A stretch of 64,000 nt of DNA from IMGVR_UViG_3300025030_000041:124001-188000; one strand, 5' to 3'. Positions 2,232 to 63,578 are shown, counted from the stretch's first letter. Made by a program: numbers and translations. The notes: generated from the sequence alone by a model not told the origin.

Positions 2232-2357
2232 ATGAAAAATTTTACTGAATTTTTAACTGAAATTTTTAATTCTACTACACAGATCAAGTGGGATAATTCA
2301 AAATACCCAGATTTAACTGGATATTTTATAAGTAAGGTTTTATATAAAAAAATATAA
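2232..2357 (+). pseudogene. 5' fragment of a capsid-targeted protein gene interrupted by the tnpB element
   Basis: MKNFTEFLTEIFNSTTQIKWDNSKYPDLTGYF aligns by eye with the N-terminus of 43799-44296 (MFKNFQKFIIEGLKNPLLINWNKSQSEWIGVF). Confidence 0.6.
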
Positions 2358-2433
2358 AAATATTTAAATAAAAAGAAAAAAATAATAGTTTTTTAGATTT
2401 TTTTTTAAATTTCTAAATAAAATAAATAATATT

Positions 2434-2502
2434 ATGAAGTCTTACTCAAATAGAAGAAAACTAAATAAAATAAAAAAAGACTTAGAAACTACTACCGTCT
2501 AA
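2434..2502 (+). pseudogene. C-terminal remnant of IS607-type serine recombinase TnpA
   Basis: MKSYSNRRKLNKIKKDLE resembles the recalled YS.RR....K.L C-terminus of IS607 TnpA; directly upstream of tnpB. Confidence 0.45.
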
Positions 2503-2510
2503 CCTAACTC

Positions 2511-3872
2511 ATGCAAACTATTAAACTACCATACTATACGTCCTCTAACTCTGATAAATCTACTATTTTGTCATACCTTAAACAATACTCAAACTGCCTA
2601 CACTTTATGTTCAACCGTACAAATGATAACCTTTCTGAAACTACTATCAAACACCTACCAATCAATAATATACAACTGTTAGACAGCTGGTTTAAACAGT
2701 CTTGTGTGAAAGAGGCTACTCAAATTGCTACTACAAATAAAAATACTAAAGTAATATTTGGTGGAAAAAAGAATTTTTTCAACAGACTAAATAACAAAAT
2801 AACAAAAGACGAATACAAAATACTAAAACTTAGCCCTCTCTACTCTATAGGAGAAAAATCTAACCCTAGTGTAAAAGCTAACCGTAAATTTCATATAGAG
2901 CAAGACCTACTAAACATAACTTTCAAACCAAACAAACTTACCAAAATACCACTCAAACTTCCAATACTAAAACAAAACTACCTTAAAATACTCAAAACAC
3001 TATACCTTAGACAAGAACAAAAAAATATTTCTATAACCTATAAAATAGACACTAAATACATATACATATCTTTCGACGAAAAAGAACTATCAGTAAATCC
3101 TAATAGACCCTATACTGAAAACAGAGTACTATCTATAGACTTAAATCCTAACTATATAGGTTGGTCAATAGTTGATTGGTTGTCTGAGAGTGAGTTTAGG
3201 GTAGTAAAGAGTGGGGTATATTCGTTAAAATATTTAAATGATATAGAGAGGAAATTAAAGTTAAGTTCTAGTGATAGTAAGAGGAAGTATATTAGTGATA
3301 AGAGGAAGTGCGAGGTATTGGAGATATGTAAGAATTTGGTAGGTAAAGGTTTGTATTATGGAGTAGAAATAATTGGTATAGAGGATTTGAGTATTAGGGG
3401 GTCTGATAAGGGAAAGGGTAGGATGTTTAATAGGTTATGTAATAATAATTGGTTGAGGAATGATATTGTTAATAATATTGGTAAGAGGTGTAATATTTAT
3501 GGTATAAGGATGCAGAAAGTTAGGGCTGAGTATAGTAGTTTTGTAGGAAATATGGTATTTAGGGGGCTGAAACTACCTGATATGGTATTGAGTGCAATAG
3601 AGATAGGTAGAAGAGCTTATGAATATGTGAATCAATATATTAAGAAAATAAAAGATAAAAAAAAGAATATAATAATACCAAATGATAAATTCTATAAAGA
3701 TTTAGTAGTCAAGTCATTGGAAGAATTTGATATTAAATTTGAGTTTAGTAATTTGGTAGAGTTATATTACTTAGTAAAAAAGTCTAAAATTAGATATAGA
3801 CTTTCTTTAGAGGAGTTAGGTTTAAAGTTTTTGAGGCAAAGACATAAAAAATATGAGGCTATTATAATATAG
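2511..3872 (+). CDS. tnpB: TnpB/Cas12f-like RNA-guided RuvC endonuclease lacking the Zn finger
   Basis: RuvC-I VLSIDLNPNYIGWSI, RuvC-II IGIEDLSI, RuvC-III LPDMVLSAIEIGRR; no CxxC pairs between II and III. Confidence 0.85.
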   Translation: MQTIKLPYYTSSNSDKSTILSYLKQYSNCLHFMFNRTNDNLSETTIKHLPINNIQLLDSWFKQSCVKEATQIATTNKNTKVIFGGKKNFFNRLNNKITKDEYKILKLSPLYSIGEKSNPSVKANRKFHIEQDLLNITFKPNKLTKIPLKLPILKQNYLKILKTLYLRQEQKNISITYKIDTKYIYISFDEKELSVNPNRPYTENRVLSIDLNPNYIGWSIVDWLSESEFRVVKSGVYSLKYLNDIERKLKLSSSDSKRKYISDKRKCEVLEICKNLVGKGLYYGVEIIGIEDLSIRGSDKGKGRMFNRLCNNNWLRNDIVNNIGKRCNIYGIRMQKVRAEYSSFVGNMVFRGLKLPDMVLSAIEIGRRAYEYVNQYIKKIKDKKKNIIIPNDKFYKDLVVKSLEEFDIKFEFSNLVELYYLVKKSKIRYRLSLEELGLKFLRQRHKKYEAIII

Positions 3873-3896
3873 TATTATATTTTTTAATATTTTTGA

Positions 3897-4142
3897 TATT
3901 TAAATAAATCTAATCCTGACATTTTATTTTATACAACACACGAAGAAAAAAGACAAAACCGTTATGAAAATTTAACAGATTTTCTTTTACAAACTTAGAT
4001 TGGAAATACTTATAGCTACACTATATTTGATATTGGAAATAACGGTAAAATTTATGTATTGACTAAAAATGGAATTGATAAAAACTTAATTAATCAATTA
4101 GAAATTAATGATACCTTTATGAATTGGATAAATGAATTATAA
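3897..4142 (+). pseudogene. 3' fragment of the interrupted gene, with internal TAG at 3996
   Basis: YLNKSNPDILFYTTHEEKRQNRYENL resembles FIEEIQPESFIFCALDESKTRRLFYDRF of 43799-44296; no start codon, in-frame stop. Confidence 0.5.
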
Positions 4143-4167
4143 AAAATAATAGGGCTTTTTATTTTGT

Positions 4168-4194
4168 AAAGGACTCAAAAATGAGTCCTTTTTT
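4168..4194 (+). terminator. intrinsic terminator
   Basis: AAAGGACTCA-AAAA-TGAGTCCTTT hairpin followed by T-run. Confidence 0.7.
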
Positions 4195-5978: not shown

Positions 5979-6608
5979 ATGAAACATATAAAACTTTTTG
6001 AACAGTTTATATCTGAAGAAGACATACCTAAACTTAGTCGTAAAGATATATTTATACCTAGGAGGCTTAAAGAAAGATGGGATGACTTACTTATCCATTA
6101 CCTTAATAAAGGGTATACCAAAGAACAAATATTCGTTGCTAAACCTTTTAATGAACTTATTTTTATAACTAAAAATAATATAGAAGATTTTAAGAATATT
6201 AAAGTTATAATTGGTAATGTTAGAATAAGCGAAATACATGATTTAAGAGAGCTAAGTATAGAAGAAGTAAATGGATATTTTAGTTGCTCTTATAATAACT
6301 TAACTAGTCTAGATGGCGTCCCTAAAAAAGTTGACGAATTTTATTGTTCTAATAATAAACTAACTAATCTCAAAGGATCTCCTAGTATAGTTAACGGTGG
6401 TTTTTATTGTTCTAATAATAAACTAACTAGTTTAGAGGGAGCTCCTAATAATGTTAATGAATTTGATTGTTCTTATAATTATTTAACTAGTCTAGAAGAT
6501 GCTCCTAAAATAGTTAATGGAAATTTTTTTATTACTTATAATTATAAAGATTTTACAGAAAAAGAAGTAAGAGAAGTAATCGATGTTAAAGGAATAGCTT
6601 ATGTTTAA
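5979..6608 (+). CDS. capsid-targeted 21-aa LRR protein, paralogue 1 (4 repeats)
   Basis: MKHIKLFEQFISEE, IFIPRRLKERWDD core, FxCSxNxLTSLEGAP repeats; start moved from 5922 to the conserved ATG. Confidence 0.85.
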   Translation: MKHIKLFEQFISEEDIPKLSRKDIFIPRRLKERWDDLLIHYLNKGYTKEQIFVAKPFNELIFITKNNIEDFKNIKVIIGNVRISEIHDLRELSIEEVNGYFSCSYNNLTSLDGVPKKVDEFYCSNNKLTNLKGSPSIVNGGFYCSNNKLTSLEGAPNNVNEFDCSYNYLTSLEDAPKIVNGNFFITYNYKDFTEKEVREVIDVKGIAYV

Positions 6609-6623: not shown

Positions 6624-8585
6624 TTGCGTGATTTTTTAAAAGATGGAAATTTTACATCTATCAAGTTATCAGATAGTGAGAGTAAAATTAAAACTGATCC
6701 AAAAACAGGAGAGGTTATATCTCAGTCTTCCTCTTTTATTTGGACATCTGATAAAATAAATGATATTCTTCAAAAATATAATGACGGTTTAGTTGAAATT
6801 AAAGGGATGTCAAATAGTCCTTTTTTTACTGGAGATATAGAATTGCGCCGAGGAAATATATTGTTTGAGTATACTCCATATGAATTAAATGAAATTAGAA
6901 AATGTAGAGAAGATATATTATATTTTGCAGATACATACTGTAAACTAATGACTGACAATGGGTATGAATTAATAAAAACTGCACCACATCAAAGAGAAGT
7001 ATTACTAAATTATGTAAATAATAAATTTACAATTAGTATGCAATCTAGACAATCATTTAAGTCTACTACTGCTAGTATATTTATAGCATGGGTTACATGT
7101 TTTTCTTATGATAAGAATGTATTAATGATTGCTGATGTTAGTGAAACCACTAAAGAAATAATAGATAAGTTCTGGAATATTTATCGTACTTTGCCATTTT
7201 TTATAAAACCTGGTGTAATAAATGATTCAGTTATGTCAAAGAAATTTGATAATTTATGTAGAATATTTGGCAGAAATACTAGTACTAAAAGTGCTATTGG
7301 AGTAACTGCATCTATTGTTTATATTGATGAGTTTGCTCATATTGAGCCGTCGTTTATAGAAAAATTCTATAAATCTGTTTACCCAACTATTAGTTCTAAG
7401 CCTGATGGAAAAGTTATAATAACATCTACTCCAAATGGTCCAAATAAATTTTATGAATTATACTTAGGAGCATTAGATAAACAAAATGAATATGTTCCAA
7501 TTAGAGTAGACTGGTGGCAAATACCAGGAAGAGACGAAAAATGGAAAAATCAAGAAATTGCTAACTTAGGTAATATAGAGTCATTTAATCAAGAATATGG
7601 TTTACAGTTTTTTTCGAGCGACTCATTATTATTAACTTCAGATAATATAAAGAAAATAAACAACTTAAAAACTTCATTTATACATAAATCAATATTTAAT
7701 TTTGAAGATGAAGAGATAACATATACTGAATTAAAATGGCATCCTAATTTTAAATTAGATAATTTAAAAAATGATAAACATTGTTATGTATTTACTGTAG
7801 ATACTGCTGACGGTATAGAAAACGATTATTCTGTTATTAATATATGGAAATTAACAACTATTCCTTTTAAATCATTATTTAAAAATAGAGATCTATTTAG
7901 AAATGAAATAGATTGCTTTGGATTAGTACAAGTTGGAGTATTTAGAAGTAATACAACTGATATTAATCAATTTAGCCGTATATTAGAAATATTATCATTT
8001 AAAGTATTTAATACTGATCATGTAAGAATAATACTTGAAATGAATCATAAGGGTGACCTATTAGTTAATAAATTGGAAAATAATAATTCTTATTGGCCAG
8101 GATTATTATTATACAGCAAGCACTCTAATGAATCTAAAATATTAAAACCTGGTATAAAAACTACATCATCTAATAAAGTCAGGTTTTGTGAAAGATTAAA
8201 TTATTTTATAACGTTAGATAAAATAATGCCGACTGACTCTGAAACTATTAAAGAATTAAATGCATTTGGTAAAACTAAAAACGGGTCATATAGAGGACAA
8301 AATGGTCATGACGATTTAAGTATGAGCTGTGTATTTTTAAGTGCATTTTATGAAAGTTCATTATTTATAGAATTAGCAAGTGAAAGCTACGATTTAATAC
8401 AAAATGTTGAATATAAGAAAAAATTTGAAAATGAAATATTAAAATATAATACTGAACGCGAATATAGTACTAATTCTGTAAATTTCAATTCATTAAACCA
8501 AATAAATAATCTTTTTAATAATGTTAATAATGGAAATTACTTACCACATTCATTGATAAATAGTGAAGACCCTTATAAAATTTAA
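6624..8585 (+). CDS. terL: terminase large subunit (T4 gp17-like)
   Basis: SRQxxKST Walker A region, YIDEFAH Walker B, ITSTPNG coupling motif, TVDTADG and GHDDL RNase H-like nuclease motifs. Confidence 0.92.
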   Translation: MRDFLKDGNFTSIKLSDSESKIKTDPKTGEVISQSSSFIWTSDKINDILQKYNDGLVEIKGMSNSPFFTGDIELRRGNILFEYTPYELNEIRKCREDILYFADTYCKLMTDNGYELIKTAPHQREVLLNYVNNKFTISMQSRQSFKSTTASIFIAWVTCFSYDKNVLMIADVSETTKEIIDKFWNIYRTLPFFIKPGVINDSVMSKKFDNLCRIFGRNTSTKSAIGVTASIVYIDEFAHIEPSFIEKFYKSVYPTISSKPDGKVIITSTPNGPNKFYELYLGALDKQNEYVPIRVDWWQIPGRDEKWKNQEIANLGNIESFNQEYGLQFFSSDSLLLTSDNIKKINNLKTSFIHKSIFNFEDEEITYTELKWHPNFKLDNLKNDKHCYVFTVDTADGIENDYSVINIWKLTTIPFKSLFKNRDLFRNEIDCFGLVQVGVFRSNTTDINQFSRILEILSFKVFNTDHVRIILEMNHKGDLLVNKLENNNSYWPGLLLYSKHSNESKILKPGIKTTSSNKVRFCERLNYFITLDKIMPTDSETIKELNAFGKTKNGSYRGQNGHDDLSMSCVFLSAFYESSLFIELASESYDLIQNVEYKKKFENEILKYNTEREYSTNSVNFNSLNQINNLFNNVNNGNYLPHSLINSEDPYKI

Positions 8586-8592: not shown

Positions 8593-9228
8593 ATGAAACA
8601 TATAAAACTATTTGAACAATTCATATCTGAAGAAGACACTCCTAAGCTTAGTGCTAAAGATATATTTATACCTAGAAGACTTAAAGAAAGATGGGATGAC
8701 CTGTTACTTCCTTACCTAAATAAAGGTTATACCAAAGAACAAATATTTGTAGCTAAACCCTTTGATGAACCTATTGTTATAACTAAAAATAATATAGGAG
8801 ACTTTAAAAGTATTAAAGTTATAATTGGTAATGTTAGAATACGTGGAATAACTGATTTGAGGAAGTTAGGTATAGAGGAAGTAACTGGTTTTTTTGATTG
8901 TTCTAATAATAGCTTAACTAGTCTAGAAGGAAGTCCTATTATAGTTGGAGGATTTTTCTATTGTTATAATAATAATTTAACTAGTCTTGAAGGAGCTCCT
9001 GCTACATTTAATGGATGGTTTAATTGTTCATTTAATAGCTTAACTAGTCTTGAAGGAGCTCCTGCTACATTTAATGGATGGTTTAATTGTTCATTTAATA
9101 GCTTAACTAGTCTAGAAGGAGCTCCTAAAGTAGTTAATGGCAAATTTGCTATTAATGATAATATAAAGAACTTTACAGAAAAAGAAGTAAGAGAAGTAGT
9201 TGATGTAAAAGGAAAAGTTATTGTTTAA
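8593..9228 (+). CDS. capsid-targeted LRR protein, paralogue 2 (4 repeats)
   Basis: same architecture; near-perfect 63-bp tandem duplication around 8990-9120. Confidence 0.85.
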   Translation: MKHIKLFEQFISEEDTPKLSAKDIFIPRRLKERWDDLLLPYLNKGYTKEQIFVAKPFDEPIVITKNNIGDFKSIKVIIGNVRIRGITDLRKLGIEEVTGFFDCSNNSLTSLEGSPIIVGGFFYCYNNNLTSLEGAPATFNGWFNCSFNSLTSLEGAPATFNGWFNCSFNSLTSLEGAPKVVNGKFAINDNIKNFTEKEVREVVDVKGKVIV

Positions 9229-9229
9229 A

Positions 9230-9856
9230 ATGAAACATATTAAATTATTTGAAGAATATATTAATAGTATAGAACTAATTACTGAATTAGCGATTAGCCT
9301 TGAAACACTACTTGATATTAATAATAAGTCTATTGCATTAGTTATGCAAGAACTTAAACATAAAAAGTATAAATACTCTATTTATGATTTTGAAAATTCT
9401 AAAGTTCTTGGATTTATGGAAATTGCTGAAGACGACGGCATAATGCAAGTATCTAAGGTTGCTTCTGAAAAAGGTTATGGCCCGCTATTATACGATATAT
9501 CCATGATGAATATTTATCCAAACGGACTTTCACCAGATAGAAGCTCAATAACTAGTGGAGCTCTAAATTTATGGAAATACTATTATGAAAATAGGCGAGA
9601 TATTATAAAAAAAGAAATTAAACCAGGAGATCCTGCCTATATGGAATCATATAAAATGGGAGAAGACCTTACTATACATACTAACCCTGAAATTTTAAAA
9701 CTATTAAACACTATTTATTATTTAAAACCAACTACTACATATTATAAATATACATCATTAAGCAATCAAATAATTAATGATAAAAATGCTTCGCCTAACT
9801 ATATTTTAAATAAAGGCCAAACTTACTTTTGGAAAAAATACCTTAATAAAGTATAA
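9230..9856 (+). CDS. capsid-targeted protein with GNAT-like fold
   Basis: MKHIKLFEEYI N-terminus; QVSKVASEKGYGPLLYD resembles the GNAT acetyl-CoA motif A; SPDRSSITSGALNLWKYY. Confidence 0.55.
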   Translation: MKHIKLFEEYINSIELITELAISLETLLDINNKSIALVMQELKHKKYKYSIYDFENSKVLGFMEIAEDDGIMQVSKVASEKGYGPLLYDISMMNIYPNGLSPDRSSITSGALNLWKYYYENRRDIIKKEIKPGDPAYMESYKMGEDLTIHTNPEILKLLNTIYYLKPTTTYYKYTSLSNQIINDKNASPNYILNKGQTYFWKKYLNKV

Positions 9857-10097: not shown

Positions 10098-10170
10098 TCC
10101 TCTGTAGCTCAGTTGGTAGAGCACATAACTGTTAATTATGTGGTCGGTGGATCATGCCCATCCAGAGGAG
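10098..10170 (+). tRNA. tRNA-Asn(GTT)
   Basis: acceptor TCCTCTG/CAGAGGA, D arm GCTC/GAGC, anticodon arm CATAA-CTGTTAA-TTATG, discriminator G; atypical T loop, no encoded CCA. Confidence 0.88.
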
Positions 10171-10188
10171 CATAAAAACTTTTATTTT

Positions 10189-10625: not shown

Positions 10626-12467
10626 ATGTCAAAGGAATCTATAGACGGAAAATATAAAAAATTAACAGATATTGAGCATATTTTAATTAGACCTGGAATG
10701 TATATAGGGTCTATTAAACCTCATAAAGAAGTTAAATATATTTTAAATGAGAATAATAAGTTTGAATTAAAAGAGATAGAGTATATTCCAGCATTTATTA
10801 AAATATTTGATGAAATTTTAATAAATTCAGTAGATGAGTCAAAGAGAAAAGGAAGTAAACTTACTACCATAAAAGTTAATATTGATAATAATAAAATTAT
10901 TATTATTGATAACGGAGGAATACCTGTTATTAAGCACACTGAGTACAAGGAGTGGATACCAGAAATGATATTTTCTAATATGAAGTCTGGTAGTAATTTT
11001 AATGATAACGAGCAAAGAGAATCAGCTGGAACTAATGGGGTAGGATCAACTATTACTAATGTATTTTCAACAGAATTCTATATATCAACGTGTGATGGTA
11101 AAAAACGATTTGAACAAACCTTTTCTAATAATATGAGAAGCCGGTCAACCCCTAAAATAACTACCTCAAATAAAAATCACACTATTATATCATATATACC
11201 AGATTTAGAAAAATTTGGTTTGACTGCAATAGATGAAACTCATTTTAATTTAATTAAAAAACGAGTTTACGATATTGCTGGGTGTAACCCAAAATTAAAA
11301 GTTTATTTTAATAATGAAGAAATAAAAATAAAATCATTCCAAGACTATACTAAATATTATATTGATTCCTGTTTTTATGAAGAAGATAAAAGATGGAATA
11401 TTGGAATTGCTTTAAGTACAGACGGATTTCAACAAGTAAGTTTTGCTAATAGTACAGAAACTTATGCTGGTGGAACTCATACTGACTATATAACATCACA
11501 AATTATAAATCAATTACGAGAATATTTTAATAAAAAACATAAAGTTGATATTAAGCCGTCTGATCTTAAAAGTCATTTATTTTTATTCATTAATAGTACT
11601 ATCATAAACCCAGCATTTAATAGTCAAACTAAAGAAAAACTAATAACTGAAACAAAAGATTTTGGGTCAGAATATATTATTACTAATAAAACAATTCAAT
11701 TAATATTAAAATCAGAAATAGTAGAGCACATCTTAGACTGGATACAACGTAAAAAAGATGCAGAAGAAAATAAATTAGCAAGAGAACTTAATAAAAATCT
11801 TAATAAAATTAAAGTTGATAATTTAATTGATGCAAAGGGCAAAGAACGAATGAAATGCTCTATATTTTTATTCGAAGGATTATCAGCAGGAGCAGCTTTT
11901 AGAAAATATAGAGTTCCAGAGTATCAGGGTAGTTTTTCATTAAGAGGTAAATTCATTAATGCAATGGAAATACCAAATTCTAAATTAGTTGAAAATACTG
12001 AAGTTGTTAATATAATGGCGGCAGTTGGTCTTAAATTAGGGCATAAACCTGACTTAAAACAAATTAGATATGGCAAAATAATAATTGCCGTTGATATGGA
12101 TGTAGATGGTAACTCGATTTGTGGGTTACTAATTAATTTCTTTTATAAATATTGGCCCGAATTGTTTGATTATGGTATAATATCGAAATTAGAGTCACCG
12201 TTAGTAGTAGTAAAAAATATAAAAACTAAAAAGAAAATATCTTTCTATTCTCAAACTGATTATGATACCTGGGCAATCTCTAATAATCTTAAAGAATATG
12301 AAGTATCTTATAAAAAAGGATTAGCTGCACTTGTTGAAGAAGAATATAAAGATATAATACAAACTCCTAAATTATTAACATTAAAAAATAATGAGGATAG
12401 TAAAAAATATTTAAATATTTGGTTTGGCAAAGACTCTAATTTACGAAAAATAGAAATTTTGAAATAG
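10626..12467 (+). CDS. type IIA DNA topoisomerase ATPase/TOPRIM subunit (T4 gp39+gp60-like)
   Basis: EHILIRPGMYIGS, EILINSVDE, GTNGVGS (GHKL), FEGLSA and DMDVDG (TOPRIM), YKKGLA. Confidence 0.95.
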   Translation: MSKESIDGKYKKLTDIEHILIRPGMYIGSIKPHKEVKYILNENNKFELKEIEYIPAFIKIFDEILINSVDESKRKGSKLTTIKVNIDNNKIIIIDNGGIPVIKHTEYKEWIPEMIFSNMKSGSNFNDNEQRESAGTNGVGSTITNVFSTEFYISTCDGKKRFEQTFSNNMRSRSTPKITTSNKNHTIISYIPDLEKFGLTAIDETHFNLIKKRVYDIAGCNPKLKVYFNNEEIKIKSFQDYTKYYIDSCFYEEDKRWNIGIALSTDGFQQVSFANSTETYAGGTHTDYITSQIINQLREYFNKKHKVDIKPSDLKSHLFLFINSTIINPAFNSQTKEKLITETKDFGSEYIITNKTIQLILKSEIVEHILDWIQRKKDAEENKLARELNKNLNKIKVDNLIDAKGKERMKCSIFLFEGLSAGAAFRKYRVPEYQGSFSLRGKFINAMEIPNSKLVENTEVVNIMAAVGLKLGHKPDLKQIRYGKIIIAVDMDVDGNSICGLLINFFYKYWPELFDYGIISKLESPLVVVKNIKTKKKISFYSQTDYDTWAISNNLKEYEVSYKKGLAALVEEEYKDIIQTPKLLTLKNNEDSKKYLNIWFGKDSNLRKIEILK

Positions 12468-12471
12468 TTAT

Positions 12472-13809
12472 ATGGAAAAAACTATAAAAGACTTTTTAAA
12501 TGAAGAATATAAAGATTTCTCATTATATACAATAGAACAACGAGCTATTCCATCAGTAATAGATGGGTTTAAGCCAACTGCTCGTAAAATAGTTGCATGT
12601 AGTATTTCAATATGGAAAAACGGAACTGAAAAACCTCTTAAAGTATTTCAATTAGTAGGACAAGTTGCAAGTACAATGCATTATCACCATGGTAACTCTA
12701 GTGCTGAATCTGCTGTTATTACACTAGCCCAAAAATTTAAAAATAATTTACCTCTACTAGATGAAGTTGGCCAATTTGGCTCAATAAGATCTCCTGACCC
12801 AGGCGCAGCTCGATATATTGGAACTAAACTTACTAAAGTATTCAATTTAATTTATAAAGATAATGACTTAGTATCATATAAATATGATGAAGGAGATAAA
12901 ATAGAGCCTAATTACTATTTACCAATTATACCTATGGTTTTAATAAATGGCAGCTCTGGCATAGCAGTTGGATTTAGTAGTAATATCTTAAATAGAAATC
13001 CGTCTGACATTACTAACGCCTGTCTAAATATCCTAAATGATAAAAAATTTTATAAAATAAAACCATTTAATAACTATTTTTCTGGAGAATATAAAAATGA
13101 CCCTGAAAATAATAAAAGATGGATTATTAGAGGTAAATATACTGTAGAAAATACATCAACTATTAAAATAGTAGAACTACCTCCTAGCATGACATATGAA
13201 AAATATGAAAAAGTTTTAGATAAACTAGTTGAAAATAGACATATAGCGTCATATACAGATAATTGTAAAGATAATATCGACTACACTATTAAATTTAATA
13301 GAGAAAAATTAGCAAGTCTAACTGAAGACGAAATATTTAATTTATTAAAACTAGAAGAATCTGAAACTGAAATGTTTTCAACTTTAGACGAATATGGTAA
13401 ACTTAAAATATTTGAAAGTGCAGAAGATATTATTTACTATTTTGTCAATTTCAGACTAAACTTTTATATAAAAAGAAAAAATAGTTTAATAGATAAATTA
13501 AATCATGAACTAAAAATAATAGCAAATAAAGCTAAATTTATTAAAACTATTATTGATAATAAATTATCAATTAATAATCGTAAAAAAGACGATATATGCA
13601 ATGATATAGAAAAACTTAGCCTGGATAAAATAGAAGGGTCCTGGGACTATCTTTTACGATTACCAATATATTCCCTTACTAAGGAGTTATATGATAAATT
13701 AAAGGACGATTTTAAGTTTAAAATAGAAGAGTTGGATAAGCTTAAGAAGAAGGATCCAAAGTCTATGTATATAGAAGATTTAGAAGAACTAAAACGAAAC
13801 TTAAGATAA
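12472..13809 (+). CDS. type IIA DNA topoisomerase breakage-reunion subunit (T4 gp52-like)
   Basis: RAIPSVIDGFKPTARK, YHHGNSS, AARY catalytic tyrosine, LINGSSGIAVGF. Confidence 0.95.
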   Translation: MEKTIKDFLNEEYKDFSLYTIEQRAIPSVIDGFKPTARKIVACSISIWKNGTEKPLKVFQLVGQVASTMHYHHGNSSAESAVITLAQKFKNNLPLLDEVGQFGSIRSPDPGAARYIGTKLTKVFNLIYKDNDLVSYKYDEGDKIEPNYYLPIIPMVLINGSSGIAVGFSSNILNRNPSDITNACLNILNDKKFYKIKPFNNYFSGEYKNDPENNKRWIIRGKYTVENTSTIKIVELPPSMTYEKYEKVLDKLVENRHIASYTDNCKDNIDYTIKFNREKLASLTEDEIFNLLKLEESETEMFSTLDEYGKLKIFESAEDIIYYFVNFRLNFYIKRKNSLIDKLNHELKIIANKAKFIKTIIDNKLSINNRKKDDICNDIEKLSLDKIEGSWDYLLRLPIYSLTKELYDKLKDDFKFKIEELDKLKKKDPKSMYIEDLEELKRNLR

Positions 13810-51004: not shown

Positions 51005-51101
51005 TTAGTTTATTTATTTTCTTTTTAAAATTATCTTTTAAAAATTTATTTATTTTAAAATCTATTTTCAAATAAATAATAAGAAAATATTGTATATAAA
51101 A

Positions 51102-51614
51102 ATGGGATATGCTAAATTATATGAAGAGTTTCTTTTTGAAGTATCAGTAGAAGCTGAAGATGTAAAAACAGAAGATTTAATATCAGAAGATAAGTTTAAA
51201 TCTCTAATTACTAAATTAGTTAAACATGAATTAAAAGAAGAACTTGATCCAGAAGAAGAAACTAAAGAAGTTTCTATGGAAGGTTTAACTAAAGAAGAAC
51301 TTGAGAAAGTAAATAAGTTTATTGAAACTTTATGGGTTAATGAAGAACCTAGTAAAAATGAAGTAAATGAAGCTGATTGGTTTGGATTAAAAAGAAAAAA
51401 ATTAGAAGAAAATTTAAATAGTAAAGTAAAAGTATGGGTTCCTAACGCTATGAATAAGCCTACTCAAGAAATTCTTAATAAATTCTGGGAAGATGCTAAA
51501 AACGATAGTTATGACGGACTTCCTAGTATAGGCGAAGATAAAAACTTAATATATAGACCATCCAGTTCAATAAAATGGGGTACAAAACGACATGCTTTTG
51601 GCGGCGGTAAATAA
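51102..51614 (+). CDS. capsid-targeted acidic protein
   Basis: MGYAKLYEEFLFE; VNE|AD site; ATG at 51102. Confidence 0.6.
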   Translation: MGYAKLYEEFLFEVSVEAEDVKTEDLISEDKFKSLITKLVKHELKEELDPEEETKEVSMEGLTKEELEKVNKFIETLWVNEEPSKNEVNEADWFGLKRKKLEENLNSKVKVWVPNAMNKPTQEILNKFWEDAKNDSYDGLPSIGEDKNLIYRPSSSIKWGTKRHAFGGGK

Positions 51615-56469: not shown

Positions 56470-57270
56470 TTACTTACTTACTTTTACAGTATCAGATAGT
56501 GCCATTATTTTATATAATTCAGTTAAATTAACACATAATCCGGGTGTACTATTCATTTTAGTATCAATAATTTCGGCCAGGGTTCTTAGTAAAATAAATA
56601 AAGGTTCTCCTAATACAGCTTTATACTGAGGAATATGCCCAATTTTAACAGTTGCTCCATCAGTCCAAATTTCATTTGATATATCATGAATACTACTTCC
56701 TGCTGTAGTATTAACTTGAGAACTACTATTAATTGTTATAATTCCTCCTTTTAATTCTATCATAGACTGAGTTCCTTTATGTTCTAATACTATAGAATTA
56801 TCTGGCAGAATATTAACTTTAGATTCATCTAATTCAAAAGTTAATCCTTTAGTCGTAGTATAATACATTTTTAGTTTTACATCGCCATCAAAACAAAATA
56901 TATGAGTTCCATCATACTCACTTTGTAATTGGTCTTTAACGTCTTTTGCTAATTCTTGGTGAAAATGATATTCTGGACAGTAAATATCTTGGTTATCAAA
57001 AGTAACTTTAAGAATAGCCCCATTTTTAGGTATTGAGATTTGTCCAGATAATCCGTCTTGCCCAAAAATATTACCTAAACGAGGATACGCCCATGGTAAA
57101 TCTTCAGTTGCTAAATTATCAAAAACGCCAAATACATTAATTTTACATCTTCCTTTTTTTTCAGGATCTTGATTATCTACAACCTTACCTAAAAAATCTC
57201 TACCTAAAAATTCATCTCTACCTAAATTATAAATATCTCTATTTTGGCCTATTTGCCTTGATAAACTCAT
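56470..57270 (-). CDS. baseplate central spike/hub, gp5/VgrG N-terminal OB-fold type, no lysozyme domain
   Basis: FLGKVVDNQDPEKKGRCKINVFG...DLPWAYP...SIPK.G..L.V.F. Confidence 0.8.
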   Translation of the reverse strand: MSLSRQIGQNRDIYNLGRDEFLGRDFLGKVVDNQDPEKKGRCKINVFGVFDNLATEDLPWAYPRLGNIFGQDGLSGQISIPKNGAILKVTFDNQDIYCPEYHFHQELAKDVKDQLQSEYDGTHIFCFDGDVKLKMYYTTTKGLTFELDESKVNILPDNSIVLEHKGTQSMIELKGGIITINSSSQVNTTAGSSIHDISNEIWTDGATVKIGHIPQYKAVLGEPLFILLRTLAEIIDTKMNSTPGLCVNLTELYKIMALSDTVKVSK

Positions 57271-57304
57271 AATACTAAACTCTTAATTTATTTGTAAACA
57301 TTTC

Positions 57305-58480
57305 TTATCGTTGAGGTTTCTTATCATATACATTTCCTAACTCAGTTCTTATATTAGGTGGTATAAATTTATTAATATCATCATAAACTTTCTTATTAGT
57401 TAATGGTAAGTTAAGAAGCAAGGGTTTTCCTTTATATACATTACCCATTGGAGTTAATTTAGATTCTAACTTATTTACAACTCCACCTATTAATTCTGCT
57501 GGAGCTCTTCCTATTTTACCTAATACATTATCTTTAATAATGTCAGCTTTTTTAATTGCATTACTAAAAATTCCAAAATTATCTCCAGTATAAGCTGTTT
57601 TTAATTTATTAGTTTCGTCTAATCTAATTTTATCTACATTATACTCATCTTGTGTTTGCGGGGCATGCCCGACTCCTCTTATCATTGTTGTATCAAAATA
57701 TGGAAATTTATTTTTTTCATACCACTTATGTACTTTAATTTTAAATTTGCCATTAGCCATTTTAGGATCTGCATTATCAACAGAATCTCCACCTGGAAAA
57801 CTTTCACTAAAATCAAATTCACATTGAGTAAATACAAATTCTATATAGTTTAATTGATTTACTATACTTTCTAATCGTAAAAGCCGTTCCTCATCAGTTA
57901 AAGCATTCATTTTTACATTATCTAATGCATCCAATGTTGCTCTAATATTTCTAAATTCACAAACTTGAATACTCATCTCAAAATATCTTAAATTTTCTGG
58001 AACTACTTCTCGCATATATACAGTGTCATAAATTGCGCTTCTATATAAATTTGCTAAAAATGCCATCCGCAAATCAACTGATTCTAAACAATTAAAAGTT
58101 AAAACTGCAGTTTGAAGCGGCTTACTTATATCAGTACTCAATTTCCATACTTCATTTAAGCCTTCAATAGACTGAAAATACCAAGGAGTAGTATCCTGTA
58201 TCCAACTTATAATATCTCTAAACTTATCTAAATAATCAGACTCCTTTTTATATCCTAATAAACTTAAATATTCAATTGCGCCATACCCATCACCTGGACG
58301 AGTAAATAACGGTGAATTCATTAATTTGCTATCATATTGTAAAAAAGAATTTAAATTAAATTGAACATTAAATGAAAGAAAGGTTGGATCTTCAATTCCA
58401 TATTTACTTTCAAATAAAAATCCTCTTCTAAAATTTTGAAATTCATTAGTATTTACAAAACTTCTTAGATTAGTAGCCAT
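57305..58480 (-). CDS. putative baseplate/tube-initiator structural protein
   Basis: EDPTFLSF, PWYFQSIEGL, CLESVDLR, REVVPENLRYF; baseplate cluster context. Confidence 0.45.
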   Translation of the reverse strand: MATNLRSFVNTNEFQNFRRGFLFESKYGIEDPTFLSFNVQFNLNSFLQYDSKLMNSPLFTRPGDGYGAIEYLSLLGYKKESDYLDKFRDIISWIQDTTPWYFQSIEGLNEVWKLSTDISKPLQTAVLTFNCLESVDLRMAFLANLYRSAIYDTVYMREVVPENLRYFEMSIQVCEFRNIRATLDALDNVKMNALTDEERLLRLESIVNQLNYIEFVFTQCEFDFSESFPGGDSVDNADPKMANGKFKIKVHKWYEKNKFPYFDTTMIRGVGHAPQTQDEYNVDKIRLDETNKLKTAYTGDNFGIFSNAIKKADIIKDNVLGKIGRAPAELIGGVVNKLESKLTPMGNVYKGKPLLLNLPLTNKKVYDDINKFIPPNIRTELGNVYDKKPQR

Positions 58481-58493
58481 TTAATTTATTTAT

Positions 58494-60008
58494 TTAAACT
58501 GCTGAATTTGGATTAGTACTACCTATTTCAGGTATAGGCTTCCACTCTCGCTTTGTTAAAATCATCTGAGTCCAAAAATTAGTTGTATCACCTGTATATT
58601 GGTTACTTCCCTTACTATAATTTACTATTAAACTATCTACATAATAATAATCAGATAAAAATCTATCAATTTTTATATTTAATTGTTTTTCAGCTTGATA
58701 GATACTTCCATCTAAATCTTTTTCTTCATATTCTTCACTATGTACAGAATCTGACGAGTTTTCATTTACTATTACAATTGGTATTCTCATACCTCTAATT
58801 ACAGATGGATTATACCCAAGAGTAGTTATTTTTAATTGGATTTTATTTAATTCAATATTATTTTGAAAATTATGAAATTTGCTATATATATAATTCATAT
58901 GTCTATTATCGTATTCTATTCCAGCCCATTTATGTACTTCTAAATCTTTTAAAACATCATTTGTCGGTTTCAAACTATTCTTTTTAGATTTCATATTTCG
59001 AGTAACTAATGACTCTACAAATAAATCTTGATATTTATTAGTTTCTAGATTAGCTTCATAATAATTCATTTTACGTCTTACTCCATTCTCAATTAAGTTA
59101 CTTCCTAAATTAGAAACTAAATTATAACTTGTAATAAACATTGGAGACTTTCTATATTTAGAAAAATTACTAAATAATAATCTCATAGTATCGTCTTCTA
59201 TTTCTTTTTTATCATTTAATAAATAATCAGTCATAGTTAATGAATAAAAAATAAAATCATCTATTGTTTGCTCATCACTAAATTGGTTATTGACATTAAT
59301 TAAATTTAAATAATAGTACTTATCAATAAATGTTCTATAAAAAGATTCATCATTTTTCCAAATATGTTTTACTGTATCTTTTATAAAACCTTCATAATTC
59401 CAATTTGGATTAATCCATGTCATTTTATCATCCATGGAGTCTTCATTTGTAGCATATCCAATCTGCATTTCAATAGCTAATTGTTTAAATAAATCAAAAG
59501 ATGTTAAGTCTTTATACGCTTTAATATTATATTTCCATAAAGTCGGAACAAATAAAATACCACTTATTGTAAATGTTTTATTTTTACCATGCATTTCCAT
59601 TTCTCCACTTCCACTTGACATTGGAGTTGCATCAATTATTAAAAAATCAGCGCGTATAGGTTTATATTGCTCTTTTTTAGACCTAATATATATACTTATC
59701 TTTTCATCAGATTTAGGAAAAAAAGCACTATTTAAATTTCCATTTACATCTAATACTGTTACAGTAATACTTGGCAAAAATGAATCTTCTTCTAATCTCA
59801 ATGACCTAATAGTATCATATGCAAACCTATATTTACCAATTTGAATAAATGGAAATAAATCCCCGTATATTCTAGATTCATCTCTTAACGAATCTTTCCT
59901 TTGTTCAGGTTTAACACTTGGATTATCTAAAACAGTATCCATAGTAGACATCTTTTCTAATGGTATCTTAGGATCAACTAGAGTAAGTATTTTATTTGAA
60001 ACTCCCAT
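58494..60008 (-). CDS. putative baseplate hub protein (gp27/GpD-like)
   Basis: position between gp53-like and gp5-like genes; FIDKYYYLNLINVN motif. Confidence 0.5.
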   Translation of the reverse strand: MGVSNKILTLVDPKIPLEKMSTMDTVLDNPSVKPEQRKDSLRDESRIYGDLFPFIQIGKYRFAYDTIRSLRLEEDSFLPSITVTVLDVNGNLNSAFFPKSDEKISIYIRSKKEQYKPIRADFLIIDATPMSSGSGEMEMHGKNKTFTISGILFVPTLWKYNIKAYKDLTSFDLFKQLAIEMQIGYATNEDSMDDKMTWINPNWNYEGFIKDTVKHIWKNDESFYRTFIDKYYYLNLINVNNQFSDEQTIDDFIFYSLTMTDYLLNDKKEIEDDTMRLLFSNFSKYRKSPMFITSYNLVSNLGSNLIENGVRRKMNYYEANLETNKYQDLFVESLVTRNMKSKKNSLKPTNDVLKDLEVHKWAGIEYDNRHMNYIYSKFHNFQNNIELNKIQLKITTLGYNPSVIRGMRIPIVIVNENSSDSVHSEEYEEKDLDGSIYQAEKQLNIKIDRFLSDYYYVDSLIVNYSKGSNQYTGDTTNFWTQMILTKREWKPIPEIGSTNPNSAV

Positions 60009-60019
60009 GTATTAAATAG

Positions 60020-60610
60020 TTAACCAAATATTTTTTTAGTAAGTAATCTTTCTTTTAATCTAGCCTTACTTAATGGTTCAGGACAATTTTGAGTAGTTAT
60101 TTGAGTAACATCTGGGCCGAATACAATTTCTCCATTTTCTATTTTAATATTCTGAGTTCCGGGCTTAGATATATTAGGAGGTAATACTTCTTTTTTTCCT
60201 AACTCTACCTTCTGCTTAATTAAATCTAACCTCTTTTTATCTTTAACTGTTTCAGCCTTTATTGCAATCTCTTCTTTTTTATTTTGATTTTCATTTATAC
60301 CATCAGACGGAGTAACTATCATTGCATCCATCTCGCTTCTCTCTGGGATTAGCAGGATTTGCCCAGGCTCAATTGATAATGGATTTGATATTCCATTATA
60401 AGTTAATATATAATCTAACAGAGACTCATCCCCGTACTTTAATTTAGCTATTAAATCAGGTCGCATTGCAAATTCATCTGTTACTACTACAATGTCTTTA
60501 ATAGCTGGAGCAAATTTATATTTAATAGTATTAACAGCTAAGTCAACTATAACATCGTTATTAGGTTTTTTAAAAAACCTTTTATTAAGAAGAGTCGTTA
60601 AATTTAGCAT
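60020..60610 (-). CDS. baseplate wedge protein, gp53/LysM-like
   Basis: MRPDLIAKLKYGD....DYILTYNGISNPLSIEPGQILLIP. Confidence 0.75.
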   Translation of the reverse strand: MLNLTTLLNKRFFKKPNNDVIVDLAVNTIKYKFAPAIKDIVVVTDEFAMRPDLIAKLKYGDESLLDYILTYNGISNPLSIEPGQILLIPERSEMDAMIVTPSDGINENQNKKEEIAIKAETVKDKKRLDLIKQKVELGKKEVLPPNISKPGTQNIKIENGEIVFGPDVTQITTQNCPEPLSKARLKERLLTKKIFG

Positions 60611-60613
60611 TAA

Positions 60614-62344
60614 TTAGAAATTAGTTTTTGTTCCATCAATAAATGCAGGAAGAGCTGGGTTATTTGCCATATATTCACCCCATCTAACTTTAACTCTATC
60701 TCTTATGACATCTACATCTCGCTTATTTCCTCTAGCTGAATCATTATCTTTTTTAAGAGTTTCTGCTGTATTTTTATTAGTTGGTATTCCATTAACATCT
60801 GCCCCGGGAAATGTATTTCTTTCAGATGGTAATTGGCCAAGAGTAGAATAATACATTCGGCCTGTTCCTAAATTTAACATACTTTCTATATCTCCTTTAT
60901 CTCTAGGTTTTCCATGTTTTAATTTAACAGTAAAAGTTACTTCAGTAGGAAAATCCTCTGCACCTAATTTTTCTGAAAATTCAAGAGTACTGTCATCTAA
61001 TATTAAATTACCAATAACTGCTATAGGATTTAACGGATTTCCAATTGCTAAATGCCATTCTCCAATAGGCTCACCTGTTAATAATGATTTAACAGATAAC
61101 ATCTTAGGTCTAGACTGAGACGCTAAGTTACCCATCGCTAAGTTTAATCCGCCCTTTATTAATTCTTCTAACCCTGCTCCTGAAAATAATTTACTTAAAA
61201 AAGACTCTCCACCTTTAGTTGCAGCGCCGAGCTGGCTTTTTATAGAATCATAATATTTACCACTATAAAATAAGTTTTGATCTCCTAAGAAACCAACTTT
61301 ATTAGATTTTGGAAAATACCGTCTCGCACCACCCCAAAATTTAGCATTAGAAAATGTTAATAATAAAAAATTAGATATAATATCTAGCATTGCAACCTTA
61401 GGACTTATCTTATCATAAGAATTTAATTTATAATGAAATTTAACAGTAATTGGATTATCAAATTTAAGTCCACGAGTTCTCATATGTGTTTTATCAATAA
61501 CATTAACAGGTCCGTATACTCTATTTTGAAATGACCCACTAGACGGATCGTATATGCCTTTGGCCCACTCATTATAGTTTTCCTTTCTTCCATCCCAATC
61601 GCCATTCCCTTGACCTGCTTGTATTAATCCAAGAGCTTTCTGTATTTTATCTGGTGCAAATTGTTCAATTCCGCTACCAAACTGGGTCTCATTACCATCA
61701 ATATTTTGCACTTCAGACTTTAGTTCCTCCCAATTATATCCATATGTAAATTTTAAAATATCTTTAAGTGAATTGCCTGGGTCTTCACCTAACCAACTAA
61801 CCGACTGAGCAATTGGTACTAATATTTGGTCTTCTGTGCCTTTAAGATTATCTAAAACAGGCATTGGATAACGTCTTAAAGTAATCATATAATTATTAGG
61901 TATTTTACCATAATGTTTACAATATAAAAAATCATTCCATGAATACGGAGCTGGACCAAATACTGAATTTTCATCTTTTTGATCTTGAGACCATTTAATA
62001 ATTTTAGCAGCAGTTGGGGTAGATGCCTCTGGGGCGTATTGATCATTTAAATTTGTAAGATAATGTGAAGTCTCATTATACTCGGCTTTATTTAATCCAT
62101 ATCCATTCTTTGCAACTCTAAATACAACATAATTATTAAATAATGAATTAGTACCACTAATAGAAGGTATATCACCAGTTAATACCTTATCAGTATATCC
62201 TCCTGTAATATTTTCAGTGATAGACTTAGTAGTAACACTACTTGCAACATTTTCTTGTTGAGTATCTAGCATATCATCCAATAATTCTGGATTCATACCA
62301 GCAGCAAGCATTTGCTCTCGTCGACTCTTAGGATCAATTGCCAT
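60614..62344 (-). CDS. putative baseplate structural protein
   Basis: FLYCKHYGKIPNNYMITLRRYP; GEWHLAIGNPLNPIAVIGNLI...GAEDFPTE....V.LKHGKPRD; baseplate cluster. Confidence 0.5.
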   Translation of the reverse strand: MAIDPKSRREQMLAAGMNPELLDDMLDTQQENVASSVTTKSITENITGGYTDKVLTGDIPSISGTNSLFNNYVVFRVAKNGYGLNKAEYNETSHYLTNLNDQYAPEASTPTAAKIIKWSQDQKDENSVFGPAPYSWNDFLYCKHYGKIPNNYMITLRRYPMPVLDNLKGTEDQILVPIAQSVSWLGEDPGNSLKDILKFTYGYNWEELKSEVQNIDGNETQFGSGIEQFAPDKIQKALGLIQAGQGNGDWDGRKENYNEWAKGIYDPSSGSFQNRVYGPVNVIDKTHMRTRGLKFDNPITVKFHYKLNSYDKISPKVAMLDIISNFLLLTFSNAKFWGGARRYFPKSNKVGFLGDQNLFYSGKYYDSIKSQLGAATKGGESFLSKLFSGAGLEELIKGGLNLAMGNLASQSRPKMLSVKSLLTGEPIGEWHLAIGNPLNPIAVIGNLILDDSTLEFSEKLGAEDFPTEVTFTVKLKHGKPRDKGDIESMLNLGTGRMYYSTLGQLPSERNTFPGADVNGIPTNKNTAETLKKDNDSARGNKRDVDVIRDRVKVRWGEYMANNPALPAFIDGTKTNF

Positions 62345-62380
62345 ATATTAATACCTCTTTTTTATTATTTATTAAAAATA

Positions 62381-62410
62381 AAAAAAGCCTTAAAAAATTA
62401 AGGCCTTTTT
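62381..62410 (-). terminator. probable intrinsic terminator
   Basis: AAAAAAGCCTTAA-AAAA-TTAAGGCCTTTTT imperfect hairpin downstream of 62431-62832. Confidence 0.55.
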
Positions 62411-62430
62411 AAAATTATGTTAAATATGCA

Positions 62431-62832
62431 TTATTCAGTTGGAAATAACTCCCTAATATCGTCATGATCAATAGATTTATCACCAGATACTGTTTTTAGT
62501 ATGCGACCATCACCATCTTCATCATGCTGACCAAATTTAACTTTAGCAACTGTAGTAAAATGTTCACGAATTTTAGAAAAATAATTTATTTCATCTTCAT
62601 CATAATCATCAATACTAAATGGAATAGCATATACTGGTAAAATACTATACCCTGCATCATTTTTATCATAATGCTCCCAATGGCCTTCATCAACAAAAAT
62701 ATAGTATATATCCTTTTTTAATTTATTTTTTTCATATTTTTGTTTTTGTTTTTCAAAGTCAGGGTCCCCATCATATTTATATTTTGGTCTAGGCGACTTA
62801 AATTCTTCAAATAATTTTACATATTTTTTCAT
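62431..62832 (-). CDS. capsid-targeted acidic protein
   Basis: MKKYVKLFEEF. Confidence 0.65.
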   Translation of the reverse strand: MKKYVKLFEEFKSPRPKYKYDGDPDFEKQKQKYEKNKLKKDIYYIFVDEGHWEHYDKNDAGYSILPVYAIPFSIDDYDEDEINYFSKIREHFTTVAKVKFGQHDEDGDGRILKTVSGDKSIDHDDIRELFPTE

Positions 62833-62892
62833 TTTCTTATTATATTTTTAATTATTTATATTGAAAAATTTCAGAAAACTTATAAAAACTAG

Positions 62893-62918
62893 TATATATA
62901 TATATATATATATATATA
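62893..62918. repeat. (TA)13 microsatellite
   Basis: direct count in intergenic DNA. Confidence 0.9.
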
Positions 62919-62945
62919 ACATTGATACACAATTAAATAAAATTT

Positions 62946-63578
62946 TCAAAAATAAACTTCTCCTTTTATATCAACTATGCCTCTTATTTCTTCTTCTGTA
63001 AATTTCTTCACATTATCGATAATCATAAAATCTCCTTTAACTATCTTAGGAGCTCCTTCTATACTAGTTATAATATTATAAGAACACTTAAAATCTCCAT
63101 TAACTATCGTAGGAGCTCCTACTAGACTAGTTATATCATTAGTAGAACAACTAAAATCTCCATTAGATATAGTAGGGCCGCCTTCTAGACTAGTTAACTT
63201 ATTATGAAAACAACTAAAATCTCCATTAGATATAGTAGGAGATCCTTTTAAACTAGTTAATCCATTAAATGAACAATTAAACTCTCCAGATACTTCTTCT
63301 AAATTTAATTCTTTTAAAATATCACCATTTATTCTAACACCACCTATTATTACTTTAATATCCTTAAATTCTTTTACATTAGTGTTATTTATACTAATAA
63401 ATTCATTAAAATCTTTAGATACATATATTTGGTCTTTAGTATACCCTTTATTTAGGTATGGAATAAGTAAGTCATCCCATCTTTCTTTAAGTCTTCTTGG
63501 TATAAATATATCTTTAGCACTAAGTTTAGGAGCTTCTTCTTTGAGTATAAATTGTTCAAATAGTTTTATATGTTTCAT
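62946..63578 (-). CDS. capsid-targeted LRR protein, paralogue 11 (4 repeats)
   Basis: family core; middle block shared with paralogue 4. Confidence 0.85.
   Translation of the reverse strand: MKHIKLFEQFILKEEAPKLSAKDIFIPRRLKERWDDLLIPYLNKGYTKDQIYVSKDFNEFISINNTNVKEFKDIKVIIGGVRINGDILKELNLEEVSGEFNCSFNGLTSLKGSPTISNGDFSCFHNKLTSLEGGPTISNGDFSCSTNDITSLVGAPTIVNGDFKCSYNIITSIEGAPKIVKGDFMIIDNVKKFTEEEIRGIVDIKGEVYF

Follow-up and report, generated by a model that had tools for sequence, protein, structure and literature searches.

We describe here a short N-terminal peptide, MKHIKLFEQFISE, that heads about one quarter of the genes in a 64-kb stretch of DNA (the window: positions 124,001-188,000 of the 246,115-bp groundwater metagenome contig IMGVR_UViG_3300025030_000041, JGI 3300025030 Ga0209518_1000025), which is the structural gene region of a large myovirus. 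By analogy with phage T4, this 13-residue tag is probably the capsid-targeting propeptide of the lineage: it would dock its cargo to the scaffold and be removed after a Glu residue by a Peptidase_S77 protease, the cargo staying in the head. Phage proteins that are carried in the capsid and injected act before any phage gene expression, and T4 IPI* is a counter-defence factor of this kind. To our knowledge, injected proteins are not recognisable from sequence outside a few model phages. Packaging mediated by a capsid-targeting sequence (CTS) and the diversity of the T-even internal proteins (IPs) are already established.

The consensus of the tag is MKHIKLFEQFI[SN]E, and shorter forms exist, e.g. 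MKNFTEFLTE. In the window, MKHIKLFEQFISE or a variant differing by one or two residues starts ten paralogous leucine-rich repeat (LRR) proteins, and six to nine unrelated small genes have a MKHIKLFEQFISE-like or a shorter T4-like start (Table 1); the tagged proteins range from 93 to 297 aa. A first-pass annotation of the window had proposed about 19 tagged genes. All the N-termini that it listed are present where it placed them, and alignment verified the tag on each of the ten LRR copies. Most of the 19 genes are real, the two at fault being 29612, which is weak, and 2232, which is doubtful. The consensus tag is a 13-mer with two candidate cleavage sites rather than a 10-mer, and the starts at 9230, 62832 and 63578 do not have the final Glu. 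Finally, the set of members drawn up for the window holds there but reaches beyond it, with at least seven further tagged genes on the contig. An eleventh LRR paralog (44289-44993), absent from the earlier list, was found by alignment to have lost the tag and kept the remainder of the protein.

We defined a seven-residue core motif, [FY]x[EQDK][FYW][ILV]xE, which occurs 20 times in the six-frame translation of the window; 15 of these occurrences lie 3-6 residues after a start Met. The starts at 9230, 62832 and 63578, where the final Glu is absent, and the start at 29612 do not match it. Across the 72 non-overlapping genes of the window, 13 N-terminal copies were seen against 0.11 expected, and when paralogs were counted once, at least seven independent tagged families remained (Poisson P ~4e-11). 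A degenerate 33-nt DNA pattern for the tag gave 10 matches in the window and none in 100 shuffles. The 50 nt upstream of the tagged starts showed no conservation, the sequences being unrelated, and the T4 late-promoter box TATAAATA was not enriched in the window (43 seen versus 39.6 expected), which rules out a larger DNA repeat or a shared promoter as the cause. At tag positions 4-11, 15 LRR copies showed 19 synonymous versus 2 non-synonymous changes, the amino-acid changes in the tags of the LRR copies falling chiefly at positions 2, 3 and 12. The synonymous excess, together with the unconserved upstream DNA, indicates that the peptide is conserved rather than the DNA or RNA: the tag is selected as a peptide.

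A protease of the T4 prohead type is encoded on the same contig. Scanning IMG/VR with the tag DNA pattern returned two pieces of the contig outside the window, and in all 87 kb of its 246 kb were read. One piece (L127, positions 86,984-98,606) holds the head module of the window phage. There, L127:117-2162 (-) encodes a 681-aa protein with an N-terminal Peptidase_S77 domain, the T4 gp21 family (34.7 bits versus a Pfam cut-off of 27); in the near-identical sister contig L115, a Gp23-family major capsid protein (118 bits) follows the protease gene. Just upstream of the protease gene stand six further tagged genes, four of the LRR family and two others (MNKKFKLYEEF and MEKYVKLFEDF), and the 87 kb hold at least 26 tagged genes. 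When the protease was aligned with T4 gp21, His and Ser were invariant (T4 H85 and S140), and it keeps an N-terminal L-[IL]-x-E and, just past the catalytic domain, an [IL]-x-E-[SA]. In T4 gp21, the N-terminal motif agrees with the cleavage logo of gp21, and the protein is processed at its C-terminal end (PMC9026906). Near residue 314, the scaffold-like C-terminal extension of the protease (~480 aa) has a tag-like stretch, IIKYNEYLAE; the C-terminal half also has 16 [IL]-x-E sites between residues 300 and 600, as expected of a gp22-like scaffold cut to pieces; no gp22 Pfam match was obtained for a scaffolding core. An L-F-E-S site lies about 60 residues into the capsid protein, [IL]-x-E-[SN] sites occur in a comparable N-terminal part of its relatives, and T4 gp23 has in the equivalent region an L-T-E, which we take to be the maturation cut. 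The Gp23-family capsid protein (on L115), the large terminase and the gp13-like neck protein place the head module in the T4 superfamily; the Portal_T4 match comes from a relative, the uncultured-phage record LR756500, and not from the window phage. A search of IMG/VR with the capsid-protein alignment did not bring up the capsid gene of the window phage itself, the top 80 matches all being nearer to LR756500.

The LRR proteins consist of the tag, an acidic proline-rich linker of ~17 residues and, after a helical cap, 2-8 LRRs of 22 residues each. In the alignment the copies differ chiefly in repeat number, and the ten tagged paralogs have about 100 conserved N-terminal residues in common. In an AlphaFold2 model of the protein encoded at 5979-6608, tag and linker (residues 1-30) are predicted to be unstructured, with a predicted local distance difference test score (pLDDT) <50, and residues 31-209 are modelled with confidence as an LRR solenoid (mean pLDDT 86 over these residues, >90 for the solenoid). 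The best Foldseek matches of the model were generic bacterial LRR domains, none of them with E <=1e-3, and Pfam LRR_4 scored 22 bits, under its cut-off. The tandem 22-aa repeats are nevertheless of the LxxLxLxxN type by which leucine-rich repeats are recognised, and with the predicted solenoid they put the family in that class. Four non-LRR tagged genes (9230, 26175, 27819 and 44296) come directly after an LRR gene, which suggests two-gene cassettes. Pfam and PHROG gave no match for most of the window cargoes, 9230 included, and Pfam detected no MuF domain in the tagged proteins scanned. Language-model and fold searches of the cargo provided leads only, 9230 appearing GNAT-like and 44296 DUF6169/DUF6934-like, and returned nothing for 26175.

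We searched for the tag in other viruses and in cells with an exact DNA pattern encoding M-K-x-I-K-x-F-E-[QE]-[FY]-I. IMG/VR contained 130 matches, in 117 stretches on about 100 contigs from many samples, and all 130 stand at the start of an open reading frame (ORF). Past residue 13 the tagged proteins diverge completely, and all-against-all BLAST of the cargo parts yielded 46 families. The portability of the tag, which the first-pass annotation had proposed, is thus apparent both in the window (at least seven unrelated families) and in related viral contigs (these 46). Pfam recognised among the cargoes an ATP-grasp protein (under cut-off), DUF5661, DUF5824, a cytidylyltransferase-like enzyme, an AAA_33/Zeta-toxin-like kinase and a 2H phosphoesterase. 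The last of these, a tagged 182-aa protein (L116:8009-8554 (-), IMG/VR contig 3300025684_000026), matches 2_5_RNA_ligase2 at 27.3 bits (cut-off 27) and shows a likeness to Acb1, which acts against the cyclic oligonucleotide-based antiphage signalling system (CBASS), under the cut-off at 23.7 bits; it is a candidate for a pre-packaged enzyme that would degrade defence signalling molecules. In 596 Gb of bacterial and archaeal genomes, the exact pattern was found once. This sole cellular match (JALOAD010000028.1, from a metagenome-assembled genome of 'Candidatus Muiribacterium halophilum'; L217) carries two LRR genes whose 22-aa repeats are of the same type, a tagged gene of 123 aa, a guanylate-kinase-like gene and a baseplate gene resembling gp6. 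Its LRR and baseplate genes indicate that it is probably a phage contig binned by mistake. The tag is virus-specific, and at least 23 of the 105 foreign tag-bearing loci have recognisable structural genes of the clade.

The T4 record shows that ipII and ipIII start with MKTYQEFIAE and ipI with MKTFKEFTSTTTPVSTITE; IPII is 100 aa and IPIII 193 aa long. For IPIII, the 10 N-terminal residues are enough to bring about packaging; within the CTS, targeting information resides in residues 4 and 7 and processing information in residues 8 and 10; gp21 cleaves after L/I-x-E, and CTS fusions have delivered foreign proteins, among them GFP and nucleases, to capsids and from there into cells (PMC9026906). 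These four positions are exactly the ones constrained in the core motif of the window, in which positions 4 and 7 are aromatic or hydrophobic and positions 8-10 read I/L-x-E. Window-derived patterns retrieved only ipII and ipIII among the 277 candidate starts of the 16-kb T4 region that holds them, none of 259 starts in the T4 head-gene region and none of 3388 starts in the 225-kb genome of the Tenacibaculum phage PTm1. In both systems an extreme N-terminal peptide, hydrophobic or aromatic at the targeting positions and ending in [IL]-x-E at the processing positions, stands on otherwise unrelated small proteins, next to a gp21-family protease, a Gp23-family capsid protein and a T4-type portal (here in relatives). 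However, the consensus MKHIKLFEQFISE of the window phage has 13 residues and two candidate cleavage sites whereas the T4 CTS has 10 residues, and at least 26 tagged genes compare with three IP genes in T4. Moreover, the dominant cargo here is the LRR paralog family, the tagged genes are spread across the structural gene region and not grouped in one IP locus, and the window-phage system is known from sequence alone. The logic and the protease family are the same as in T4; the longer invariant tag, the far larger gene set, the cargo types and the wide uncultured spread are new. Compared with the T4 tag, the long form may be seen as having gained one additional turn of helix (MKxI..F-EQF-I.E versus MKTY..F-I.E). 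A literature search found no paper with the peptide strings and no description of the tag, of its counterpart in phage PAU or of CTS-like tags in jumbo or huge phages of Bacteroidota.

Phage PAU is the nearest isolate, both by large terminase (34% identity) and by capsid protein; it is a Sphingomonas phage whose host, according to the title of PMC3738902, has been reclassified as Sphingobacterium. In the 114.7 kb examined (10-125 kb of the 219-kb genome), 15 PAU genes start with MK[TS][IL]xx[LM][YF]E, all at 90.6-121 kb around the head-completion, portal, protease and capsid genes, and no tagged gene was found at 10-90 kb. These genes (gp142, gp145, gp146, gp149, gp150, gp152-154 and others, starting MKT[IL]xxL[YF]E) include gp152, annotated by the depositors as scaffolding, and gp142 and gp154, annotated as internal capsid protein; the PAU protease is also a Peptidase_S77. 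The PAU tag, MKxIxKL[FY]E, matches the first half (KL[FY]E) of the window tag, suggesting L-F-E at positions 6-8 as a cleavage site besides I-S-E at positions 11-13. It differs in mostly ending at L-[YF]-E (some tags run on to KLNE), in the clustering of the tagged genes within ~30 kb around the head module, and in that no LRR cargo was seen. Tags are also present in 47 of the 80 IMG/VR head-module loci that best matched the capsid alignment. There, 93 tagged N-termini were found, most commonly on the gene directly 3' of the capsid gene (MKRLKSYNQFITE, MAKLKTYSEFVNE) and also on genes just before it; in this clade of capsid relatives Portal_T4, Peptidase_S77 and Gp23 all score over the Pfam cut-offs. 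The tag is linked to head modules and scaffold proteins in the window phage and its relatives.

Two other phage systems are similar in part. In phiKZ/SPN3US-type giant phages, many head-internal proteins have N-terminal propeptides that are cut after Glu by a diverged gp21 homolog. However, their motif is S/A/G-x-E whereas the tags here end in I/L-x-E, their propeptides are long and protein-specific, with no described short portable tag, and the capsid and portal belong to another lineage. The MuF polymorphic toxins of temperate phages also join a conserved N-terminal module, proposed to address them to the capsid, to variable C-terminal effectors; MuF, however, being a folded domain of large size and a minor component of the capsid, is unlike a putatively cleavable 13-residue peptide.

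All together, these results suggest a pathway in three steps. The hydrophobic residues at positions 4, 6/7, 10 and 11 of the peptide would dock newly made proteins onto the prohead scaffolding core. The gp21-family Peptidase_S77 would then cut after the Glu of [IL]-x-E, at L-F-E (6-8) and/or I-S-E (11-13). The cargo would thereby be freed within the capsid, and at least part of it would later be ejected with the DNA. The first-pass annotation had called the motif a packaging tag. Its portability, the match to the T4 CTS positions, the gp21-family protease in the genome and the clustering near head modules all speak for this; docking, cleavage, encapsidation and ejection, like a counter-defence role of the LRR and enzyme cargo, are what we infer. 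That a large part of the cargo is injected, with the LRR paralogs and the enzymes acting on host defences in the way of T4 IPI* and Alt, is an analogy to which we give an even chance at best, perhaps slightly less.

Several observations weigh against a capsid-targeting tag. At least 15 tagged LRR copies in the 87 kb of phage genome read would be an unusual load of internal proteins. In the window the tagged genes are mostly scattered among tail sheath, tube, baseplate and terminase genes and not among head genes, and in the foreign loci capsid, protease or portal genes lie near the tags in 17 of 105 cases against a rough expectation of ~8%, a modest enrichment of about twofold. The tags at 9230, 62832 and 63578 do without Glu13, retaining L-F-E. 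Phage PTm1 has a Peptidase_S77 protease and essentially no tags, which means that the protease does not imply the tag; PTm1 was dropped as a model for the system. Finally, 10-13 residues are too short to prove homology to the T4 CTS, and the likeness may have arisen by convergence on a hydrophobic peptide with a terminal Glu.

The tag might instead be a signal for the prohead core or scaffold, the tagged proteins being mostly transient, degraded and expelled, and providing little or no payload. In T4, gp22, gp67 and gp68 are core or scaffold proteins that are degraded during maturation. N-proximal [IL]-x-E motifs are also present in T4 core proteins, the annotated scaffolding protein of PAU is tagged, and the protease of the window phage is itself fused to a scaffold-like part that holds many [IL]-x-E sites as well as a tag-like site in its interior. 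Given the T4 precedent, some tagged proteins may be degraded core parts that are not injected, and some, as parts of the scaffold or core, probably stay in the producing cell throughout. As an account of most of the cargo, however, we find this unlikely. Many cargoes have no obvious scaffold role (the cytidylyltransferase, the Zeta/AAA_33 kinase, the 2H phosphoesterase, the ATP-grasp protein, the LRR proteins), and the LRR cargo is predicted to be compact and well folded behind a disordered linker. In the LRR protein 5979-6608, obvious [IL]-x-E sites are in the tag only, although no systematic count was made.

The dispersal of the window genes among tail sheath, tube, baseplate and terminase genes could also mean that the peptide is an address or a regulatory element unrelated to the capsid, such as a signal for incorporation into tail or baseplate, a chaperone site, a degron or an enhancer of translation initiation; a second codon AAA and AT-rich starts are indeed common in expressed genes. 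We regard this as very unlikely, because selection acts on the peptide (19 synonymous versus 2 non-synonymous changes) and the upstream DNA is unconserved. Moreover, the tag ends in a gp21-type cleavage motif, several lineages have it on scaffold proteins as well as next to the genes for protease and capsid protein, and the same pattern singles out the T4 internal proteins. Mere paralogy, with 5'-end gene conversion among recent duplicates and no targeting function, could be invoked since LRR paralogs with about 100 conserved residues at their N-termini account for 10 of the 19 window cases and four non-LRR tagged genes lie directly behind LRR genes. It is hardly credible in view of the IMG/VR survey, in which the same 13 residues are followed by full divergence in 46 families on about 100 contigs. 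In addition, the short forms (30211, 44296 and 2232) have the motif in common and not the DNA, and one LRR paralog lost the tag while keeping the remainder. A T4-type capsid-targeting propeptide thus remains our preferred explanation.

Table 1. Tagged genes, related candidates and landmark genes of the window.
Coordinates	Strand	Feature	Remarks
5979-6608	+	Tagged LRR paralog	MKHIKLFEQFISE, linker, N-cap, 22-aa LRRs
8593-9228	+	Tagged LRR paralog	
17500-18393	-	Tagged LRR paralog	Longest (297 aa)
19700-20275	-	Tagged LRR paralog	VKPIKLFEQFILE; GTG start
24376-25011	-	Tagged LRR paralog	MKHMKLFEQFISE
26198-26833	-	Tagged LRR paralog	
27822-28520	-	Tagged LRR paralog	MKYIKLFEQFISE
40648-41094	-	Tagged LRR paralog	Shortest (148 aa); adjoins tail sheath gene
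43234-43749	-	Tagged LRR paralog	MRRIKLFEQFISE
62946-63578	-	Tagged LRR paralog	MKHIKLFEQFILK; Glu13 -> Lys
44289-44993	-	LRR paralog without tag	MKYHSLLDCNASN...; natural tagless control
9230-9856	+	Non-LRR cargo, strong tag	MKHIKLFEEY (MKHIKLFEEYINSIELITE); directly 3' of LRR gene
25546-26175	-	Non-LRR cargo, strong tag	MKFIKLFEEF (MKFIKLFEEFIQE); directly 3' of LRR gene
27526-27819	-	Non-LRR cargo, strong tag, 97 aa	MKHIKIFEEF (MKHIKIFEEFINE); directly 3' of LRR gene; alternative start 27825
29930-30211	-	Short T4-like tag, 93-aa protein	MKIQSFKDYIVE
43799-44296	-	Short T4-like tag, 165-aa protein	MFKNFQKFIIE
51102-51614	+	Short T4-like tag, 170-aa protein	MGYAKLYEEFLFE; start ambiguous (TTG at 51090)
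62431-62832	-	Half tag	MKKYVKLFEEFKSP (KLFEEF; L-F-E kept, without I-x-E)
28986-29612	-	Weak candidate	MNYIKKYSDWKSVNE; C-terminal DUF3175 domain; matches relaxed half-tag pattern only
2232-2357	+	Doubtful 41-aa ORF	MKNFTEFLTE, perfect 10-residue T4-like motif; just 5' of TnpB-like ORF
1061-1783	+	DUF5661 protein	Internal tag-like site FSQFVKE (residue 89; nt 1325-1345); second domain after site
Left edge of window		T4 gp13-like neck protein	Phage_T4_gp13
6624-8585		Large terminase	Large terminase PHROG and Terminase_6N matches
10626-13809		Topoisomerase II subunits	
13801-16623		Fibre-like protein	
23759-24319		Tail tube	
37736-40564		Tail sheath	
52235-54364	+	709-aa protein	Signal-peptide-like N-terminus, SprB repeat, PKD domain, C-terminal sorting domain of type IX secretion system (T9SS)
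56470-62344		gp5-like hub and baseplate genes	

Some window genes carry the motif in other settings. The internal copy that had been reported in gene 1061-1783 is real (FSQFVKE from residue 89) and may be either an internal cleavage site, in a cleaved polyprotein, or a gene-fusion junction; elsewhere, DUF5661 is a stand-alone tagged cargo of 85 aa (viral stretch L109). A 427-aa protein to which no function was assigned (18393-19676 (-)) has the core motif YLKWVKE at residues 17-23, which may mark a longer propeptide with a protease site. The doubtful ORF at 2232 was not called by the JGI gene caller and has a homolog in none of the loci fetched; we considered that it could be the remnant of a larger tagged gene split by a TnpB-like insertion, but no homolog was found to support this. 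The neighbouring 453-aa ORF (2511-3872 (+)) is TnpB/Cas12-like by eye, with no Pfam, PHROG or PDB-sequence match, and the assembly of the sister contig stops within it, suggesting a repeated or mobile element. A 99-aa T5orf172/GIY-YIG-like gene (29631-29930 (-)) is flanked by two tagged genes, and a tRNA-Asn(GTT) gene (10098-10171 (+)) separates the tagged gene 9230 from the topoisomerase genes.

The phage carrying the window is a giant or jumbo groundwater phage with T4-type head genes and is related to T4. The window has a G+C content of 26%; stop-codon recoding was ruled out, the ORF statistics matching the standard code and long ORFs being terminated by TAA, TGA and TAG alike. By large terminase and capsid protein, its nearest relatives are phage PAU, the Tenacibaculum phages PTm1 and pT24, the Lak megaphages and the uncultured-phage records LR7565xx (462-735 kb); no near-identical record was found among deposited phages, only distant relatives among huge phages. 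The phage encodes a protein with SprB, PKD and T9SS sorting domains (52235-54364), which points to a Bacteroidota host; the host is probably a member of that phylum, and the protein is possibly exported via the T9SS of the host. The capsid gene of LR756500 (462 kb) is 100% identical to that of IMGVR_UViG_3300025030_000039 (L017, 429 kb), from the same groundwater sample, which indicates that two related giant phages share the groundwater site. Three DUF7487/HNH homing-endonuclease-like genes were seen, in the window (21709-23685 (-)), at L115:6085-7158 and at L006:3334-4368; they are inserted beside the tail tube gene, the capsid gene and an intein-containing ribonucleotide reductase gene, respectively.

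A wider reading, which we hold tentatively and would rate somewhat short of an even chance, is that, across a large clade of T4-related jumbo and huge phages of Bacteroidota, nearly all of them uncultured, MKHIKLFEQFI[NS]E is a near-universal address label, listing the injected effectors that would counter host defences ahead of phage gene expression. These effectors may include expanding families of LRR binders, the 2H/Acb1-like phosphoesterase, the cytidylyltransferase, the Zeta-like kinase and the ATP-grasp protein. If so, packaged proteins would become predictable directly in hundreds of uncultured jumbo-phage genomes by means of a highly specific, virus-restricted tag of 13 residues tied to a gp21-family protease, and the N-termini alone would list the pre-loaded effectors of each phage. 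The tag points to new counter-defence candidates, namely the LRR families, the 2H/Acb1-like enzyme and the kinases, and, just as the T4 CTS is used in E. coli, it could be a ready-made means of bringing foreign proteins into the capsids of phages that infect Bacteroidota. With regard to evolution, these results suggest that CTS-type targeting is older than the split between the T-even phages and their distant relatives.

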